Below, one piece after another: positions 505-50,545 of a DNA stretch of 64,000 nucleotides. How positions within the stretch are numbered: the first letter of the stretch is position 1; the number at the start of each line of letters is the position of its first letter. Location of the stretch: the sequence record NC_031107.2, one strand, 5' to 3'. The translations under genes were made by a program, and so were the position numbers. The notes below the pieces were generated by a model. It saw nothing but the letters and a program-made list of their open reading frames with translations, was not told the origin of the DNA and did not search any database.

Positions 505-612
505 ACCTCAGGAAGAACCAAAACAGCTAGGGCTGCGGGATACGGTGTTGACGCTGTTTGGCCAACGCAAGAAATCGCCACCTATCCGCATGGCACCTGA
601 GTGAAGAATTCT

Positions 613-688
613 GGGGGAGTAGTTCAACTGGTAGAGCGTCGGTCTCCAAAACCGAATGTTGCAGGTTCGAGTCCTGTCTCCCCTGCCA
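613..688 (+). tRNA. trnW: tRNA-Trp (CCA)
   Basis: 76-nt cloverleaf: acceptor GGGGGAG/CTCCCCT, anticodon arm TCGGT-CTCCAAA-ACCGA, T loop TTCGAGT, encoded CCA. Confidence 0.95.
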
Positions 689-751
689 AATTTAGCCAGC
701 AAGAATGTGAGAAACCACGAGAGGACAATTGACCATTCGCTGGAGATTCTC

Positions 752-976
752 ATGAACTTGTATTTGCTAGAACGTGAAGACGATGTCGGTTACGACGAGT
801 TTGATTCCATAGTCGTTGCTGCTCCTACGGAGCAAGCTGCGCGCGCAACGAAGCCCAACCATGGGCGCTGGACTGATGTGTTTCGCAACGAAGACGGAGT
901 AATCCTGAGATGCAAACACATTGGCACAACGCACTTACCGGAAGGGGTCGTCCACGAATCGTTCAACGCAGGCTGA
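752..976 (+). CDS. small phage hypothetical protein (74 aa)
   Basis: ATG at 752 after GGAGA. The upstream part of the track ORF (656) overlaps tRNA-Trp and is rejected. Confidence 0.65.
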   Translation: MNLYLLEREDDVGYDEFDSIVVAAPTEQAARATKPNHGRWTDVFRNEDGVILRCKHIGTTHLPEGVVHESFNAG

Positions 977-1006
977 ATACCGGTGGGCTTCGGCCCACCA
1001 CACCTT

Positions 1007-1082
1007 GGGGCAATGGCTCGAGTGGTTAGGCGACGAATTGCAAATTCGGATCAGGTCGGTTCAAGTCCGGCTTGCCCCTCCA
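1007..1082 (+). tRNA. trnC: tRNA-Cys (GCA)
   Basis: Acceptor GGGGCAA/TTGCCCC, anticodon loop TTGCAAA, T loop TTCAAGT, encoded CCA. Confidence 0.9.
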
Positions 1083-1215
1083 ACACACTTGGCTCGGTGT
1101 GTTACTTTTGAAATAGAAAACCCGTAGAGCCTTTCGGGGGTGTTGCCAGATGGAGTGCTTGTTACTCTACGGTCTTTCACTCCTGAGCCCTGGCTCACCC
1201 ACCTAAAGGAAAATA

Positions 1216-1644
1216 GTGATGTTTGGATTCTTAAAGAAACGTTCTTCTCGTGCGATGTCTGAAATCAAAAAGTTCGACAAACGCGACCTGGCCGAAGCTG
1301 TGGTAAATGCTGCGTATCTGATTGCGTATGCTGACGGCGAGCTGGAGTCTTCCGAGAAAGCGAAAATCGAACAAGTGCTGCGCGCGAACCCGGTTCTCTC
1401 TAACTTCCAGAGTGAACTTAATGCTATCGCGTCCACGATCATTGCACAGCTGGAAGCCGACATCGACATCGGTCGTCGTGCTGCCCTTCGTCAGATTGCT
1501 GACGTGAAAGGCGACCAGCGTGAGTCCGAAGACGTGCTGGACGTGGCTGTTGCTATCGCCCGCGCGGATGGCGAAATCGAACCTGCCGAAGAAGCGATGC
1601 TGAAACAGATCGCCGAAGCGATGGGTCTGCGTTACGACGCCTAA
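1216..1644 (+). CDS. terB: TerB-family (tellurite-resistance/co-chaperone-like) protein
   Basis: Duplicated TerB-type motifs AYLIAYADGELESSEK and VAVAIARADGEIEPAEEAMLKQIAEAMGL; AAAGGA RBS. Confidence 0.8.
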   Translation: MMFGFLKKRSSRAMSEIKKFDKRDLAEAVVNAAYLIAYADGELESSEKAKIEQVLRANPVLSNFQSELNAIASTIIAQLEADIDIGRRAALRQIADVKGDQRESEDVLDVAVAIARADGEIEPAEEAMLKQIAEAMGLRYDA

Positions 1645-1647
1645 GCC

Positions 1648-1830
1648 ATGAAGCTGAAAACCAAGTTATACATCGCGGCCGCGTTGCTGCTGATGCTGCT
1701 TGGCAACTTCATAGGCCGTGCGTTTACGCTCATTGCCTACGTCGCTGTAATCAGCTTAGTAGCCTACCTGGCATGGCCAGTGATCAAAACCTTTGCCGCT
1801 AAGTCAAAAGCGAAGGCGAAGAAGGTCTGA
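1648..1830 (+). CDS. small two-TM membrane protein
   Basis: 60 aa with two hydrophobic segments and basic termini, located 3 nt after the terB stop. Confidence 0.65.
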   Translation: MKLKTKLYIAAALLLMLLGNFIGRAFTLIAYVAVISLVAYLAWPVIKTFAAKSKAKAKKV

Positions 1831-1892
1831 TTGATGGTGCGGGGTCGTTCCCCCGCACCTCCTCTAATTCTCATCTAAAAATAGGTATAATC

Positions 1893-2729
1893 ATGAGAAA
1901 GCTTCTAATCGGTTTAGTAGCAGCCATTAGCTTTAGCGCGTTTGCAGGACAGGACGTGACCATTACCACCGGTCAACAGGGTTTAACGTACAACGCCACG
2001 TACGGCGTTAATCTTGCCAGTGCTCTGAACGAGTTCGGCAACAAGTCCACAGTGGTACCGTCAAAAGGTTCCCTGGACAACCTGGATAAAGTGGCTGCCG
2101 GTACGGCGCAGCTCGGCTTTACACAGGCAGACGCATTCCAGTTCTGGCGCGCACAGCACCCGAACGAAGCTCAGAACGTAGACATCGTTGGCCAGTTGGG
2201 TGACGAGTGTGTCTTCGTGGCTGTGAAGAAAGACGGTAAGGTCGGTGATGAAGCTGACCTCAAAGACGGCATTAAGATTGCTGTCGGTGAACCGGACTCT
2301 GGCTCATACGCCAGTTGGCAATACCTGCAAGGTTTGGTGAAGCAGTATTCGAAAACCGAAACCTATGCGAAAGGCGGCATCCGTTCTCTGTCCAAAGTGG
2401 CCACGGGTGAATACGACGCGTTCATGTGGGTAAGTGCGCCGGGCAAACCTAATAAGTTTCTGGAAGCGGTTAACCAGGAGAGTTCAGGTCTGAAACTCAT
2501 CGACATGAACAACTGGAACGTCAACGACAAACTGCCTAACGGGCAAGCGGTCTACGAGAAGAAGTCCGCGAAAGTTGACAACAGCGCGTGGTTCGGTGGT
2601 GACGTTAAAGTCCCTTGCACCAAAACACTGGTAGTCGCTAATACCGATGCCGGTGACGATCTGCTGGAAGCCGTTTCATCCATCCTCCTGAAAAATGCAC
2701 CACGCATCATGGGGACGGCCAAACAATAG
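1893..2729 (+). CDS. secreted periplasmic-binding-protein fold, TAXI-TRAP receptor-like
   Basis: Signal peptide MRKLLIGLVAAISFSAFA; motifs ITTGQQGLTY, SKGSLDNL..V..G.AQLGFTQAD and IAVGEPDSGS resemble TAXI solute receptors. Confidence 0.7.
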   Translation: MRKLLIGLVAAISFSAFAGQDVTITTGQQGLTYNATYGVNLASALNEFGNKSTVVPSKGSLDNLDKVAAGTAQLGFTQADAFQFWRAQHPNEAQNVDIVGQLGDECVFVAVKKDGKVGDEADLKDGIKIAVGEPDSGSYASWQYLQGLVKQYSKTETYAKGGIRSLSKVATGEYDAFMWVSAPGKPNKFLEAVNQESSGLKLIDMNNWNVNDKLPNGQAVYEKKSAKVDNSAWFGGDVKVPCTKTLVVANTDAGDDLLEAVSSILLKNAPRIMGTAKQ

Positions 2730-3230
2730 CTGTGTGTTAATTGCACTGACGGGGCTGATATCCCTGTTGGAACGGTTTCATCTTTTGGGGTTGGATGAAG
2801 TGAAGAAACGTGGCACGCCAATAAGTCCACGTTAACCGGATTGCACAAAGAACTATCTGCGGGTAGGCAATCCTGCCGTTATGAACTTATCAGGTGACTA
2901 AACATGGAAGAGTTGTTCAGAGCGTTTCTGTACCGTATGGGTACCTGGTTGAAAGACCTCAAGCTCTGGAAGCTCGATACTTATTGGTTATCAGGATGTG
3001 GGACTGAACGCCATAAACCTGTTTTAGGACGAGAGTCCTCAACCCAGGCGACGTCTATTGTAGACGAAGGTCAAGCACCGGCCCATTAAGCCGACTCGCT
3101 GACATAGGCAACCTTCACCCCACAATCTGAATGTAACTGATGGGATTGAGTTCCCAGTGTGAATGAGCAGCAGTGTGCTGCAGTTGGCGCGGTACCTCAT
3201 ACGGCCGGTACGTCACGAAAAGAAAGTAAG
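2730..3230 (+). ncRNA. candidate large structured ncRNA (class unknown)
   Basis: About 500 nt with no convincing CDS and more than 10 consecutive hairpins, including GAAA and GAGA tetraloops; leads directly into the tRNA array. Confidence 0.4.
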
Positions 3231-3233
3231 TAG

Positions 3234-3301
3234 GGTTGGTGCTTGGAGGCGCTAAGACCGGAGTCCTGCTCTGGCTCAGAAGAAGAAGTCCATCAACCCC
3301 A
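3234..3301 (+). ncRNA. candidate tRNA-like RNA lacking a T arm, CCA-ended
   Basis: GTTGGTG/CATCAAC stem + C + CCA, with two internal hairpins. Confidence 0.4.
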
Positions 3302-3307
3302 CTTAAT

Positions 3308-3383
3308 GCGAGTATAGCTCAGCTGGTAGAGCATCTGGTTCCCAACCAGAGGGTCGTGAGTTCGAATCTCATTACTCGCTCCA
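3308..3383 (+). tRNA. trnG: tRNA-Gly (CCC)
   Basis: Acceptor GCGAGTA/TACTCGC, anticodon arm TCTGG-TTCCCAA-CCAGA, encoded CCA. Confidence 0.95.
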
Positions 3384-3491
3384 ATAAATCAATGACTTAT
3401 AGTGATTTCCCCATTTCGCTACAAGACTGCACCAATATATGTAAAACACCCAAGACGTGTGCGAATTCGAAGTTGAGTTCTCAGACGTATT

Positions 3492-3577
3492 GGCGCGGTA
3501 CTCAAGCGGTCAACGAGAGCAGACTGTAAATCTGTTGCCTTCGGGCTTCGTAGGTTCAAATCCTTCCCTCGCCACCA
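3492..3577 (+). tRNA. trnY: tRNA-Tyr (GTA)
   Basis: Class II tRNA with long variable arm, loop CTGTAAA, T loop TTCAAAT, CCA; one acceptor mismatch. Confidence 0.93.
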
Positions 3578-3583
3578 ATATTT

Positions 3584-3659
3584 GTTCCTGTCGTCTAGTG
3601 GTCCAGGACACCTGGTTTTCAACCAGGCAACCGGAGTTCAATTCTCCGCAGGAACGCCA
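3584..3659 (+). tRNA. trnE: tRNA-Glu (TTC)
   Basis: Acceptor GTTCCTG/CAGGAAC, anticodon arm CCTGG-TTTTCAA-CCAGG, CCA. Confidence 0.93.
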
Positions 3660-3664
3660 AACAA

Positions 3665-3810
3665 TGACACTGACTCACGCCGCCTTTGAGCAGCAGAAGA
3701 AGTCTGGCAGCCAATAAAAGCATCCACCGTCTACTGGGCCTGAGGGTCTCGGATAGAGGGTCGCTAAGCGCAGCCGTATAACTCCGTGGGATTCGGAGAA
3801 GTGTCACCCA
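3665..3810 (+). ncRNA. candidate 146-nt RNA with tRNA-like acceptor and T-like arm
   Basis: TGACACT/AGTGTCA + C + CCA; hairpin CTCCG-TGGGATT-CGGAG at the T-arm position; interior fold unclear. Confidence 0.4.
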
Positions 3811-3814
3811 TTAT

Positions 3815-3891
3815 AGAGCCGTAGTCGAGTTGGTTAAGACGCCTCCCTGTCACGGAGGAGATCGTGGGTTCGAGCCCCATCGGTTCTGCCA
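3815..3891 (+). tRNA. trnD: tRNA-Asp (GTC)
   Basis: Acceptor AGAGCCG/CGGTTCT, anticodon arm CCTCC-CTGTCAC-GGAGG, CCA. Confidence 0.95.
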
Positions 3892-3897
3892 AACATC

Positions 3898-4018
3898 AGT
3901 CACTTAATCTCAATCGGATAGAGACAGAACATTACTTCAACAACACTAGGGTGTCCATGGCACGTTGGCGTTGTGTAATGCGATGAGGTTACAGGTTCGA
4001 GTCCTGTAGTGGCTACCA
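3898..4018 (+). ncRNA. tRNA-shaped RNA with ~45-nt extended anticodon arm (121 nt)
   Basis: Acceptor AGTCACT/AGTGGCT + A + CCA, D arm TCTC/GAGA and canonical T arm ACAGG-TTCGAGT-CCTGT; no 7-nt anticodon loop. Confidence 0.65.
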
Positions 4019-4026
4019 TTTTAAAT

Positions 4027-4103
4027 TGTCTCGTAGCTCAGTTGGTTAGAGCGCTCGCCTGATAAGCGGGAGGTCGGTAGTTCAAGTCTACTCGAGACAA
4101 CCA
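4027..4103 (+). tRNA. trnI: tRNA-Ile (GAT)
   Basis: Acceptor TGTCTCG/CGAGACA, loop CTGATAA, CCA. Confidence 0.95.
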
Positions 4104-4110
4104 GCATTAT

Positions 4111-4191
4111 GGGAACATTGTCACCATCAGTGATGACAGGAGTGATGGATTCGTCCCCACTCGACTGGGTGGAAGCCTGGGTGTTCCCCCA
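4111..4191 (+). ncRNA. non-canonical cloverleaf with G-1:C73 and CCA
   Basis: G + GGAACAT/GTGTTCC + C + CCA; three internal arms, the middle one capped by a TTCG tetraloop instead of an anticodon loop. Confidence 0.5.
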
Positions 4192-4197
4192 TTTAGT

Positions 4198-4275
4198 GGT
4201 GTATGTAGTTCAGCTGGTTAGAATACTGGCTTGTGACGTCAGTGGTCGAGAGTTCGAGTCTCTCCATACACCCCA
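4198..4275 (+). tRNA. trnH: tRNA-His (GTG)
   Basis: G-1, acceptor GTGTATG/CATACAC, C73, loop TTGTGAC, CCA. Confidence 0.95.
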
Positions 4276-4280
4276 GTTCC

Positions 4281-4370
4281 GGAGAATTGTCCGAGTGGCT
4301 GAAAGAGCTCCCCTGCTAAGGGAGTGGTGGCGCAAGCTGCCCGAAGGTTCGAATCCTTCATTCTCCGCCA
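4281..4370 (+). tRNA. trnS: tRNA-Ser (GCT)
   Basis: 90-nt class II tRNA, loop CTGCTAA, long variable arm, G73, CCA. Confidence 0.95.
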
Positions 4371-4377
4371 AATCTAT

Positions 4378-4498
4378 AGTCGCCTAGCTCAAGATTAGAG
4401 CACACCTTACGACCAATACTGACCAACACGCACCGCGGTGCAATAATGGCGGTGGCGTAGTGGTGCGGTTACCGGTTCAAGTCCGGTGGTGACTTCCC
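4378..4498 (+). ncRNA. second tRNA-shaped RNA with extended anticodon arm (121 nt)
   Basis: Acceptor AGTCGCC/GGTGACT, D arm GCTC-AAGATTA-GAGC, T arm ACCGG-TTCAAGT-CCGGT; ends T-CCC; ~45-nt paired insertion in the anticodon arm. Confidence 0.65.
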
Positions 4499-4504
4499 TA
4501 CAAT

Positions 4505-4583
4505 GAACCCGTTAGCTTGAGGAAAAAGCACCCGACCCATAATCGGATTTTTCACTGGTTCGAATCCAGTACGGTGTTCGCGA
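4505..4583 (+). tRNA. degenerate tRNA with CAT anticodon (Met/Ile2-like, possible pseudo-tRNA)
   Basis: T arm ACTGG-TTCGAAT-CCAGT and anticodon arm CCGA-CCCATAA-TCGG, but C33, a bulged acceptor and a 3-prime end GCGA instead of NCCA. Confidence 0.5.
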
Positions 4584-4588
4584 TTTAT

Positions 4589-4664
4589 GACTCTGTAGTT
4601 CAGTTGGTAGAACGGATGACTGTTAATTATCTCGTCGCAGGTTCGAGTCCTGCCGGAGTCGCCA
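4589..4664 (+). tRNA. trnN: tRNA-Asn (GTT)
   Basis: Acceptor GACTCTG/CGGAGTC, anticodon arm GATGA-CTGTTAA-TTATC, CCA. Confidence 0.95.
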
Positions 4665-4669
4665 CTTTT

Positions 4670-4940
4670 GTGTTACCCTTGTCCCGGAGACATTCCTAAG
4701 ACAAATCCATCCATGGTCGGGGGTAGCACGAAAAACCATTCGCTGTTCCGTATCCTTTACGTTAGTCTCCAGACGCGTTTCGGGGTACGGGATGGTGAAC
4801 CACTTTCTGGTTGCATCATCATTTCCGTGAACCCTGCCTGGTGCGTTGGTGCGGATGTAACCGGAATCAATTAGCCCATGCCGATGCGCTAAATGTCTTC
4901 CGAACGCGACCCGCGTTCTGCCCAGGAAGACGCTCCTGTT
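4670..4940 (+). ncRNA. run of long GU-rich stem-loops, candidate small RNAs
   Basis: 11-, 17- and 13-bp closing stems at 4670-4729, 4739-4799 and 4805-4866, followed by CCA, CCA and TCA; two further hairpins to 4940. Confidence 0.45.
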
Positions 4941-47590: not shown

Positions 47591-50545
47591 TTCTTTTGTC
47601 GTGTCGTGACGGTTGTAGGAGATGACGATGTCGTCTTTCAGACCGATATCCCCATTTGCTTCTACATCCAGTTTCTTACCGATGGTGGCGCGTGAGGCTT
47701 CTGACACCACGGTAAACAGACGCATGTCTTTGTCTGGCCCCATGTTGTCTAACTCCACCCCAATTACCGAACCCTCCAGAGCCGTTTTCAACAGGTTCCC
47801 GATTTCCGTTGCAGAGATGGTTAAGCTCGCTGCTAAGTAATCGTTAATCACTTGCGACGTCTTCTTACGAATCTGTGCCAGCAAGTCGGTGTTGTTACGG
47901 TTGGCCGCAGTCAGGTAATACTTGACTGTGAATTGGTTCTCTGCCGGAATCGGTGTGACCACCCCATCCTCAGTACGGCAATCGATGTACCCCATCGTGG
48001 TGATAGGCACAAAGAAGCCGTCTGTGCGTTCCAGCAGAATCGGTTTCAACGCCGGAAGGGTGCCGGTCACATAGTTCACCAAATCATCCACCACAGAGGC
48101 CAGATACTCTTTGGCGGCCTGGGTGGTAGCAAACTTGTAACGGGCATCAAAGACTGCCATCTCGCTGCGAAACTTAATGCTGCGCGGTTTGGCAATCACC
48201 GGGTTCCCGCTTTCATCGCGCACCAGACTGTTTTTCTCGTGCTCGATTTCTTGCTGGCCCGTCTCTTCGTTGATAACCGGGTCACCTTTCCGATGCTTAT
48301 ACACGACCTGGAGTGGTGGCGTGGCAGCAGGGTCATAGGTGTACTTCGGTACCCCTTCTTCGTCACGGTCGATAACATCCACTTTCCAGGTCGCCAGTAC
48401 GTCTTCCTGGTAATACTCGTAGTTGATGGTATCGGTCACAGCACGCGCTTTACGCCAGTAGTAGGTCAGCGCTTTCCCCAGTTCGATTTTGAAAATCTCA
48501 TGGGTAATCCCAATCGCATCCCGCGTCGGTGGGGTAATCAGTGTGTCCATCTCGTAGCGCTCATAATTGCCCGGATAGTACCCGGAGCAACCGTAGAACA
48601 CATTGAACTCGGTTAACAGCCCTACCGGCGTATCCACCGGGTTCTCGCTGGTCATGCGGGTGTTGGTCAGTACCAGTTCGTCGTTACGGTCAACGTCGAG
48701 GTTACTTTCCAGCAGGAATTCCCACACACGCTCACTTCCTTGCTTGCCTACCAGTGTCCCGTTGATATACGCCAGGGTTCCATCACTGTTACGTGGCGTG
48801 AAGGAAATCTGGGCAAACACCTGGTCATCCCCGAGCGCCTGATACGGTGGCTCGGATTTGGTCACGGTACGCAGCACATAACCAGCATCGGTTTTGCTGA
48901 TGGTGTAGTCCGCCGTTACCACGCTAAGTTCGGTGGTGACGTTGGTGGTAATGAAACGCTTGGAACTGAGCTGTGGTTTATCCAGCTGATAGATACGCAC
49001 GTCAATGGCTTTGTTGTTGATGTCCACCACGTAATAGAACGGGGTGAACAGATAACGTGAAGCGTTCCCGGCATTCACCAGGTCTTCTTTACGCATCGTT
49101 TTCGCCAACTCCGTCATCTGCGCATCAATCGACAGACTGGTATCGGTAAAACGGTACAGCGTATCCGGACTGATGGTCAGACGGTTACCGTTCACCTTCA
49201 CAGTTGACAGTGCCACCAGTTCATCCCAGGAGAAGTACAGTGGCGCAGTAATCGTCCCAATCGGTGTACTGACCTTGGAGATGGTTGAGTCCAGCATCGG
49301 TGCGGTCAGGAAGTAAGTACGGCCGGTTACGTAGTCATTCGGCTTGGAGAGCGTGAGGCCGTAATCCGACACCGTGGCTTCCAGTTGCTTTTCCGTCACC
49401 GGTAGACGACGGGCACCCACTGCGTTGTTAACCACACGATTACGCAGGTCATCGAACGACAGTTGTCCACGACCGCCAGTGGCCATGCGTCCGGCCGAAG
49501 CAGCCAGCATCTTAATCGAGAACGACTTAATCGGGTTGACGTAACTCGCATCGTACTCGCTGTTCAAGTCGCGCAGCGCGAATTTGTACTCGTCAGCCGG
49601 ATAGGCCGAGACGTCGATACTGATTGGCCCCAGGGTGGTGTAGACGTCCATACGGATTTCACCGCTGACCAAATTCTTCGCCATGTAAATAGACGGGATG
49701 GTACAGCGGATATTCGACGCCCCGACTTGAATCAGCGCGGTCGGGGTATTCGGGTCATACACGTCACGGCTGTGCGTATGACTGATTTCTTCCCAGACGT
49801 TGCTGTTGAGCTTTTTCACCCACACCCGCACGTAGAAGAACTTGTTGGTGTACGCACGGGTCATGACGAAGGTGTTCTGCCCTTCCACCGTATCCGACTC
49901 CGCTTTCACCGCATACTGCATGACCGGTAAATGGATAGCCAGCAGTTGCGAGGTTGTGGTGTTGGTGCTGGTTAACTCCCAGTCCAGGGCATTGGTGGAG
50001 ACCGGAGAAATCGGTGACTGGGTATCGGTAATCCACAGTACCTGGAACGCCGGAGACTCGTTAGTACCGTACGGCAGCACACGAATCTCAATCGGGTACT
50101 GAATCGCAAAGGTGTAACCAGACACCGTGAATTCGGTATCGCGCGGAATTACCACCTTACGAATGCCTGCCACGTTCAAAGGCCAGGCTTTCGACAGAAT
50201 AGAGTCCACGTCCAACAGCAACAACAGCTCGGTGGTACCCGGCACGGCAAACACGTCTACGTAATCGACATCCGACATGTGACGGAACAGATCGTCGTAC
50301 GTCTGTGCCATACTGGCAAAGGTTTTCGGTACGGTTTCACGCGAACCCATGATGGTGGTGTGACCCATCATCGTACCCATCTCAGCCAGATACACCACCG
50401 GGTCAGTAGGGTCGCGCAGCAGGATTTCCCCGTCGGCATCTTCGACGTCCTGCAAATGGTTTAGCTGGATGGACTGCATGGCTGCGGGGTTGTGGGCCAG
50501 CAGCAGCATGTTCTCGGCCATCGTTTTATAAGTGCTTGAGCTCAT
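47588..50545 (-). CDS. large virion structural protein, baseplate-like (gp87-like)
   Basis: 985 aa, beta-rich; GGRGQLSFDDLRNRV resembles the baseplate-J/gp6 GGxxxESxxxLRxR motif. Confidence 0.65.
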   Translation of the reverse strand: MSSSTYKTMAENMLLLAHNPAAMQSIQLNHLQDVEDADGEILLRDPTDPVVYLAEMGTMMGHTTIMGSRETVPKTFASMAQTYDDLFRHMSDVDYVDVFAVPGTTELLLLLDVDSILSKAWPLNVAGIRKVVIPRDTEFTVSGYTFAIQYPIEIRVLPYGTNESPAFQVLWITDTQSPISPVSTNALDWELTSTNTTTSQLLAIHLPVMQYAVKAESDTVEGQNTFVMTRAYTNKFFYVRVWVKKLNSNVWEEISHTHSRDVYDPNTPTALIQVGASNIRCTIPSIYMAKNLVSGEIRMDVYTTLGPISIDVSAYPADEYKFALRDLNSEYDASYVNPIKSFSIKMLAASAGRMATGGRGQLSFDDLRNRVVNNAVGARRLPVTEKQLEATVSDYGLTLSKPNDYVTGRTYFLTAPMLDSTISKVSTPIGTITAPLYFSWDELVALSTVKVNGNRLTISPDTLYRFTDTSLSIDAQMTELAKTMRKEDLVNAGNASRYLFTPFYYVVDINNKAIDVRIYQLDKPQLSSKRFITTNVTTELSVVTADYTISKTDAGYVLRTVTKSEPPYQALGDDQVFAQISFTPRNSDGTLAYINGTLVGKQGSERVWEFLLESNLDVDRNDELVLTNTRMTSENPVDTPVGLLTEFNVFYGCSGYYPGNYERYEMDTLITPPTRDAIGITHEIFKIELGKALTYYWRKARAVTDTINYEYYQEDVLATWKVDVIDRDEEGVPKYTYDPAATPPLQVVYKHRKGDPVINEETGQQEIEHEKNSLVRDESGNPVIAKPRSIKFRSEMAVFDARYKFATTQAAKEYLASVVDDLVNYVTGTLPALKPILLERTDGFFVPITTMGYIDCRTEDGVVTPIPAENQFTVKYYLTAANRNNTDLLAQIRKKTSQVINDYLAASLTISATEIGNLLKTALEGSVIGVELDNMGPDKDMRLFTVVSEASRATIGKKLDVEANGDIGLKDDIVISYNRHDTTKE

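Follow-up and report, generated by a model that had tools for sequence, protein, structure and literature searches.

A tRNA-shaped gene with a long arm in place of its anticodon arm in the tRNA array of Erwinia phage vB_EamM_Asesino

The tRNA array of Erwinia phage vB_EamM_Asesino contains, at positions 4378-4498 of the plus strand, an element of 121 nt that is real and tRNA-shaped but is not demonstrably a tRNA. The window analysed here, a 64,000-nt stretch of DNA, corresponds to bases 1-64000 of the genome of Asesino (KX397364.2, 100% identity), a 246-kb nucleus-forming jumbo phage (PMC13282480). Its array, at bases 600-4700, holds 11 canonical tRNA genes on one strand, as identified by ARAGORN and Rfam. 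The 4378-4498 element lies on the same strand as these tRNAs and is reported by GenBank, by ARAGORN and by a strict scan for tRNA-shaped sequences. Both this element and a second, unannotated long-armed one at 3898-4018 are separated from their neighbours by spacers of 6-8 nt, as is the case for the real tRNAs. In GenBank it appears as ASESINO_17, a 121-nt "tRNA-Ile(aat)", and its ortholog in phage Stratton is labelled alike; the element had therefore been flagged earlier, albeit merely as an odd tRNA.

The 4378-4498 element keeps the parts that are seen by tRNA-processing enzymes, namely a 7-bp acceptor, a T arm, a D stem and a 5-nt variable loop. The 5′ acceptor strand AGUCGCC (4378-4384) forms all seven pairs with 4488-4494, one of them G-U, and U8 and A9 are present between the acceptor and the D arm (GCUC-AAGAUUA-GAGC, 4387-4401), which has a canonical 4-bp stem. 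The variable loop CGGUU (4466-4470; AGGUU in the 3898-4018 element) precedes a canonical T arm, ACCGG-UUCAAGU-CCGGU (4471-4487), with five of five stem pairs and a UUCRANY loop, and the gene is completed by the 3′ acceptor strand GGUGACU, a discriminator U and CCC rather than CCA (4488-4498). The original prediction had called the D arm, T arm and acceptor fully canonical, which is borne out for the acceptor, the T arm and the D stem; the D arm as a whole is not fully canonical, because the G18G19 pair is missing from its 7-nt loop AAGAUUA. The same prediction had pointed to the equal length of the two elements, their common AGUC start and the UCCC 3′ end of this one in place of NCCA, and all of this is seen in the sequence. 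Both the G18G19 pair and the 3′ CCA that the 4378-4498 element is missing are present in the 3898-4018 element.

This degree of tRNA likeness is not expected by chance. A strict scanner, which demanded an acceptor of 7/7, a T stem of 5/5 with a T-loop motif, a D stem of 4/4 and a length of 93-170 nt, returned exactly two elements in the 64-kb window, 3898-4014 and 4378-4494, where 0.1 were expected per shuffled window, and in ~700 kb of other loci it returned almost nothing outside tRNA arrays. The general tRNA model RF00005 gave no match at 4378-4498 or 3898-4018, either at its gathering score or at E<=10, and scored the 11 neighbouring tRNAs at 33.7-71.5 bits. Among the tRNA genes of these phages, those for tRNA-Ile(GAU) come closest to the body of the 4378-4498 element. 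Ten of the canonical tRNAs in the array encode CCA, which is absent only from the 4378-4498 element and from the Met(cat) gene at 4506-4579. The latter, a Met(cat)-like gene with which the array ends on its 3′ side, scores 33.7 bits on the tRNA model and has a mismatched acceptor stem; its counterpart in phage pEa_SNUABM_9 (L003:4233-4330) carries in its variable region a hairpin insertion, GAGAUACCC-GGC-GGGUAUC, that is not found in Asesino.

Where a tRNA has a 17-nt anticodon arm, the 4378-4498 element has an arm of 63 nt (4403-4465, element positions 26-88), the fold of which is ambiguous. The arm starts with CACC/GGUG at the canonical stem position and goes on as an imperfect hairpin; some 55 nt of this hairpin stand for the anticodon loop, and there is therefore no 7-nt anticodon loop. 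Its cap is a perfect apical palindrome, GCACCGCGGUGC (4430-4441), which occurs once in the window. The original prediction had read the arm as CACC/GGTG continued by TTAC/GTAG and capped by GCAC-CGCG-GTGC. In this coaxial layout the U84 bulge separates CACC/GGUG from UUACG/CGUAG, and the A35 bulge comes next, ahead of further pairs and the cap. When the arm is folded on its own, this layout is indeed the minimum free energy (MFE) structure (-22.7 kcal/mol, z -2.0, 9 of 200 shuffles as good), within an ensemble that is poorly defined. In the full-length RNA, however, the coaxial fold is beaten: folding under an enforced tRNA frame gives it -44.8 kcal/mol, whereas the unconstrained MFE is -47.2 kcal/mol, or 2.4 better, and places positions 25-40 in a single strand and a 52-nt hairpin beside the T arm.

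The competing full-length fold would give the RNA a quite different outline, with a 16-nt single strand and a 52-nt hairpin resembling an oversized class II variable arm. It would have no anticodon arm, because the 16 upstream nucleotides are unpaired, and it is not that of a class II tRNA, as it has no anticodon stem-loop. We regard this modelled fold as a distinct possibility, to be held tentatively. It is the MFE in both Asesino (-47.2 kcal/mol) and Stratton (-45.7 kcal/mol), and it brings together the weakly shared motifs CAACAC and UGGCGUWGUG, which pair with each other as they do in the hairpin of the 3898-4018 element. Its margin over the coaxial fold is just 2.4 kcal/mol, however, and in an alignment with the 3898-4018 element, whose coaxial arm has covariation support, neither the 'CA...UG' closing pairs nor the NGGUU variable loop requires a gap. 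Moreover, an AG-to-GA swap in Stratton leaves U30 and U31 both still paired in the coaxial fold. With two folds in competition, the coaxial arm is plausible but not settled. A search of the 64-kb window for antisense targets of the arms revealed nothing above chance; a 13-nt match at 48660-48672 was rejected, being in the same sense as the gene there.

Orthologs of the 4378-4498 element were found in phages EaH2 and Stratton (97.5% identical, 120 nt) and on a near-identical Asesino-like metagenome contig, and nowhere else. The Stratton/EaH2 copies differ from that of Asesino at three places, all within positions 82-86, and none of the three provides covariation. The AG-to-GA change keeps U30 and U31 paired and a one-G deletion takes away the partner of C29; the differences are one-sided or a deletion, and the long arm is left paired or nearly so. 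The 97.5% identity is itself uninformative on selection, since Asesino and Stratton have 99-100% identity in the adjacent His and Tyr genes.

Evidence of selection comes instead from the second element (3898-4018, plus strand, 121 nt), which has the D-loop GG and ends in ACCA. Its 61-nt arm (3925-3985, positions 28-88) has tandem G-A pairs at the base and a conserved apex, GUCCAUGGC. An ortholog in Erwinia phage pEa_SNUABM_9 (Machinavirus) is also 121 nt long and aligns to it by MAFFT at 76-77% identity without a gap. Imposing the shared structure on this pair leaves 97.4% of cells paired, as compared to 24-50% with slid partners, and seven pairs are kept by double changes, of which five fall in the long arm and one each in the acceptor and the T stem. 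RNAalifold independently predicted the same architecture. As judged from these comparisons, the 3898-4018 element is clearly maintained by selection for structure. The original prediction had argued that two copies with the same geometry point to selection; this is upheld for 3898-4018, with its seven compensatory pairs and RNAalifold fold, but not for 4378-4498, for which the orthologs compared are 97.5% identical.

The G-U pairs in the 3898-4018 element place its RNA on the plus strand, and a protein-coding reading of the reverse strand was rejected, as the open reading frame is not conserved. The parts of this type that are conserved although unpaired or non-Watson-Crick are the junction CAGAAC / GYGAUGAGGUU, with its tandem G-A pairs, and the apex. 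A box C/D or kink-turn at CAGA / GYGAUGA was dismissed by eye, there being no 3-nt bulge; the motif is a tandem G-A inside a continuous helix. Similarly, the 4-nt bulge UUCA/UUUA was rejected as a suppressor anticodon, with a stem 10 layers long and no bulge-helix-bulge. The arm of this element cannot be reduced to a canonical anticodon arm. On unrelated IMG/VR contigs of ~96-100 kb, an ordinary tRNA-Ile(UAU) gene (L005:8460-8551, and L007) matches the 3898-4018 element at 28 of 29 bases in the T arm and the 3′ acceptor strand, and its acceptor AGCCACU/AGUGGCU is nearly that of this element; such sequence similarity hints at the lineage from which the 3898-4018 body may have come.

A relationship between the two long-armed elements is less well supported. 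The 'CA...UG' closing pair and the NGGUU variable loop occur in both, and from position 85 onwards the two align without gaps as far as the 3′ end, yet their bodies are 74% identical, and each is 73-75% identical to the ordinary tRNAs of these phages, with tRNA-Ile(gat) best at 75%. The motifs that the original prediction had noticed in both inserts, TGGCGTWGTG and AACAC, do recur, at a similarity marginally above chance (local alignment, p ~0.03). A covariance model built from the 3898-type pair, termed R1, scored the 4378-4498 element at 37 bits, which is no better than ordinary tRNAs and thus gives no evidence for homology of the two arms. Common descent is possible on the sequence similarities listed here.

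Both elements appear to behave as units in evolution. The second element and its spacer AACATC form a 127-nt cassette (3892-4018, plus strand) that is cleanly absent from Stratton/EaH2 and from the near-identical Asesino-like contig (IMG/VR 3300031418_000005, Ga0308168_1000056; L010, 8998-9008), which lacks exactly these 127 nt; the junction in the contig, GCCATTTTTAAATTG, is the same as that in Stratton. Similarly, pEa_SNUABM_9 has a 3898-type element with the same AACAT spacer, whereas in its relative pEa_SNUABM_4 tRNA-Phe leads directly to tRNA-Ile. Such presence or absence of whole units between close relatives indicates that the elements move or drop out as tRNA-like units. The Asesino-like contig also diverges just downstream of the 4378-4498 element.

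The family of long-armed elements is very rare. A blastn search of 50,697 phage records returned the 4378 type in EaH2/Stratton only and the 3898 type in pEa_SNUABM_9 only, and pattern scans of IMG/VR, JGI metagenomes and GTDB genomes added only the near-identical Asesino-like contig. The other pattern-scan matches were ordinary tRNAs or chance, including one in coding sequence; in GTDB there were nine matches against ~23 expected by chance, by our own estimate, and none was confirmed by R1. The tRNA arrays of 14 related jumbo phages, examined with a relaxed scanner, held no long-armed members besides one gene of Salmonella phage SPAsTU, described below. No Rfam family covers the 4378-4498 element at the gathering score or at E<=10, and no description of such long-armed elements was found in a full-text search of the literature. 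The possibility raised at the outset, that a model would find no homologs and the insertions would prove not to be conserved, is therefore not what was observed, yet the homologs are very few.

The other long gaps of the Asesino array also hold conserved, tRNA-shaped, non-canonical RNAs. Between tRNA-Glu and tRNA-Asp, an unannotated structured RNA of ~146 nt (3665-3810, plus strand), belonging to no Rfam family, has a terminal stem, UGACACU/AGUGUCA, in which one pair is compensatory, a C-CCA end, an invariant T-like arm CUCCG-UGGGAUU-CGGAG and an invariant GGCAGCCWAUAA box. It is conserved in at least five lineages; besides Stratton/EaH2, homologs occur in three or more further lineages of jumbo phages (L013/L014, L015/L017 and L016). 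Between tRNA-Ile and tRNA-His, a cloverleaf-like three-way junction of ~82 nt (4111-4192, plus strand) has GGGAACA/UGUUCCC as its closing stem, with CCA after it; its loops do not resemble those of a tRNA, and its third hairpin bears a GGAA tetraloop. This RNA is conserved in SPAsTU (L069:4162-4245) and more loosely in a further locus (L011), with eight pairs that show double changes.

A related freedom is seen in what we call the X family, the 'tRNA-OTHER' genes of Salmonella phage SPN3US and its relatives, which have an intact tRNA body, no encoded CCA and no 7-nt loop. In SPN3US (L080:401-469, 69 nt) the arm is a 4-bp stem with a tetraloop, in SPAsTU (L069:4293-4399, 107 nt) it is 51 nt long with a z of -4.1, and relatives in Erwinia phages have loops of 4-8 nt. 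In all of them the gene lies immediately next to a Met(cat)-like gene, without any spacer between the two. Given that the arm ranges from a tetraloop to 51 nt, the anticodon end is dispensable in this family and free to vary and expand. Apparent long variants of the family in SPFM phages proved to be artefacts of record ends.

From the anatomy of the 4378-4498 element, its sister element and the analogy with known RNAs, we suggest with moderate confidence, as the most likely reading, that it specifies a tRNA-shaped, non-decoding stable RNA that is processed from the array transcript. The element would be transcribed together with the tRNAs, RNase P would free its 5′ end and the usual 3′ trimming would follow, and the RNA would then build up as a stable species of ~117-121 nt that is unable to read codons. 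Any activity might reside in the tRNA body, which could act on a tRNA-body-binding factor as mimic or sponge, or be a processing signal; alternatively, the body might serve as a scaffold that stabilises the hairpin. This proposal is consistent with a tRNA body beyond chance that RF00005 does not recognise, with anticodon readings that disagree with one another, and with an architecture selected in the sister element, for which the reverse-strand frame is discounted and the RNA assigned to the plus strand. It also fits the unit-wise gain and loss, which resembles that of tRNA cassettes, the arm freedom of the X family and the precedent of T4 rnaC. It must accommodate, however, the lack of covariation in the 4378-type copies, the z of -2.0 and competing fold of the arm, a pseudogene-like loss of CCA and G18G19, a resemblance between the two long elements that does not exceed general tRNA similarity, the rarity of the family, the empty antisense search and neighbouring proteins that name no partner.

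A serious rival, which we consider rather doubtful but by no means negligible, is that the 4378-4498 element is a dead tRNA gene, interrupted by an insertion of ~46-48 nt in the anticodon loop and carried as a remnant in a recently shared block of the array. The loss of CCA, where ten canonical tRNAs of the array encode it, and a D loop without G18G19 would both be expected of such a remnant, and so would the Stratton/EaH2 deletion, which falls in the stem at the canonical anticodon-stem position. The ambiguous fold of the arm with its z of -2.0, the uninformative identity to Stratton and the many aberrant tRNA-like genes of these arrays point in the same direction. Against decay stand an acceptor (7/7), a T arm (5/5, its T loop perfect) and a D stem (4/4) that have each remained whole, the same layout in 3898-4018, which is demonstrably under selection, and the three ortholog changes, all of which keep the long arm paired or nearly so. 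Between these two readings, the 4378-type copy, having neither CCA nor G18G19 and an ill-defined arm, may be a relaxed or diverged member of its kind, or may be decaying.

The original prediction had also compared TTACGA at the junction to an Arg(ACG) loop and had entertained a spliced product. Indeed, when run with its intron option on Asesino, ARAGORN returned tRNA-Arg(acg) with a 48-nt insert (4413-4460, plus strand) after position 37, and the 73-mer obtained by splicing in silico was called tRNA-Arg without the intron option. However, this parse is absent in the Stratton ortholog: the 97.5%-identical copy was read as Arg(gcg) in another register, and GenBank has Ile(aat). With aat, acg and gcg in disagreement, there is no stable anticodon reading. 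The 3898-type orthologs were called by ARAGORN at a lowered threshold only, as His(atg) and Arg(gcg).

We consider it unlikely that the 4378-4498 element is an intron-containing tRNA-Arg(ACG) from which an endonuclease and a ligase, of host or phage, would excise 48 nt to leave a 73-nt decoding tRNA that then receives CCA. In the ARAGORN parse of Asesino the insert lies at the canonical 37/38 site, its removal gives a product that is called tRNA-Arg, and, as in the pre-tRNAs of eukaryotes and archaea, the 3′ end of the insert is base-paired to the anticodon. According to a review (PMC7824862), RNA ligases are frequent in jumbo phages and RNA repair systems are less frequent in those that form a nucleus; the two observations weigh on opposite sides of a splicing scheme. 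A group I intron was rejected: the insert is far below group I size, A rather than U precedes the 5′ junction, and Rfam gave no match to RF00028 or to a ribozyme at the gathering score or at E<=10. A bulge-helix-bulge was rejected as well, because the junctions fall at the 1-nt bulges A35 and U84, 5 bp apart, rather than in a 3-4-3 arrangement; in Stratton the U84 bulge is a C-U mismatch, and splicing that copy would leave an anticodon stem of only 3 bp. Furthermore, the sister element at 3898-4018 cannot give a canonical anticodon arm, and the 4378-4498 element itself is without G18G19, without A20 in the most direct numbering of its D loop, and without CCA. A tmRNA was likewise set aside, with none called by ARAGORN and no Rfam match.

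A further version, in which the long-armed elements are pre-tRNAs with a new, protein-dependent short intron that an unknown endonuclease-ligase pathway of phage or host would remove, for example by cleavage within the double-stranded arm and subsequent resealing, seems to us very improbable. If true, it would mean a decoding tRNA whose anticodon is shielded from host anticodon nucleases until maturation. Least credible is the suggestion that the insert acts solely in DNA, as a promoter or protein-binding palindrome with no RNA function: the perfect 12-bp palindrome at 4430-4441 and a sigma-70-like site with an extended -10 (4419-4447, plus strand; CTGACC, 17 nt, TGcAATAAT, 9/12 matches) would suit it, but promoter-like sites at that score are equally common in shuffled sequence (four in the window against 2.5 expected), no second copy of the palindrome occurs in the 64 kb, and chimalliviruses transcribe chiefly with their own polymerases.

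The GenBank annotation of Asesino consists mostly of 'hypothetical protein' entries, and the ten proteins that neighbour the element had no relevant Pfam match and are uninformative on a partner. Upstream of the array, a phage gene at 1893-2729 (plus strand) carries the annotation of a TRAP transporter solute receptor of the TAXI family. Relatives of it with 70-72% identity occur on dozens of 35-60-kb contigs without tRNA arrays; these contigs may be host or prophage DNA, in which case the gene would seem to be host-derived.

Phage tRNA genes are now viewed as weapons against bacterial defences that cleave tRNAs (PMC10264068, PMC11464382, PMC11555353). Phage genes with a tRNA body but no anticodon would fit neither a codon-supply model nor a model of nuclease-resistant tRNAs, and would point instead to a role of tRNA shape itself in mimicry, sponging, processing signals or RNA scaffolding. 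It is worth noting that labels such as "tRNA-Ile(aat)", "tRNA-Arg" and "tRNA-OTHER" are unreliable here and inflate tRNA counts in studies of codon usage. With four non-canonical tRNA-shaped units among 11 real tRNAs, the Asesino array offers a compact system in which their role could be tested.

Several known systems bear comparison with the 4378-4498 element. Archaeal and eukaryal pre-tRNA introns resemble the ARAGORN insert in following position 37 and in a pairing of anticodon with insert that lengthens the anticodon stem; unlike them, the element has no bulge-helix-bulge of 3 nt, 4 bp and 3 nt, its parse is not conserved in the ortholog, and no splicing endonuclease is known from Asesino or its host. 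The group I introns of bacterial and phage tRNAs are likewise insertions in the anticodon loop of a tRNA-like gene, here in a bacterial virus, but they measure at least 200 nt as compared to 48 nt in this case, where there is no Intron_gpI match and no U before the 5′ junction. The 'tRNA-OTHER' of SPN3US is also a tRNA-like gene in the array of a related nucleus-forming jumbo phage, with an intact body and no CCA; it belongs to another sequence family, occupies another array position, adjoining the Met-like gene, and has a mismatched first acceptor pair.

YrlA and other bacterial Y RNA-like RNAs, together with engineered tRNA scaffolds, join a tRNA-like module to a long helix, the tRNA body serving to stabilise and process the attached hairpin. 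YrlA RNA, by comparison, ends on its long stem rather than on an acceptor stem. A match to the YrlA family (RF02553) at 3987-4052 reached 26.4 bits against a gathering score of 69 and runs across the boundary between two adjacent genes; it was therefore rejected as an artefact of tRNA adjacency.

The closest likeness is to the species 1 and species 2 RNAs of phage T4 (rnaC and rnaD), stable RNAs of 119-139 nt that are encoded on the same strand inside the phage tRNA cluster. In its cluster position, its strand, its tRNA-like T arm and its terminal stem, known here from sequence, the 4378-4498 element agrees with them. R1 scored rnaC at 13.2 bits (E 0.024) on its T-arm part only, and apart from this T arm neither rnaC nor rnaD is homologous to the Asesino elements in sequence or model. 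The layout of rnaC is its own, with a canonical T arm and terminal stem and two long internal hairpins for the rest of the cloverleaf, with no clear D arm, whereas the Asesino elements have a full tRNA body and a single long arm. By analogy of form and setting, T4 rnaC is nevertheless the nearest documented precedent for a tRNA-shaped, non-decoding RNA of the kind suggested here.
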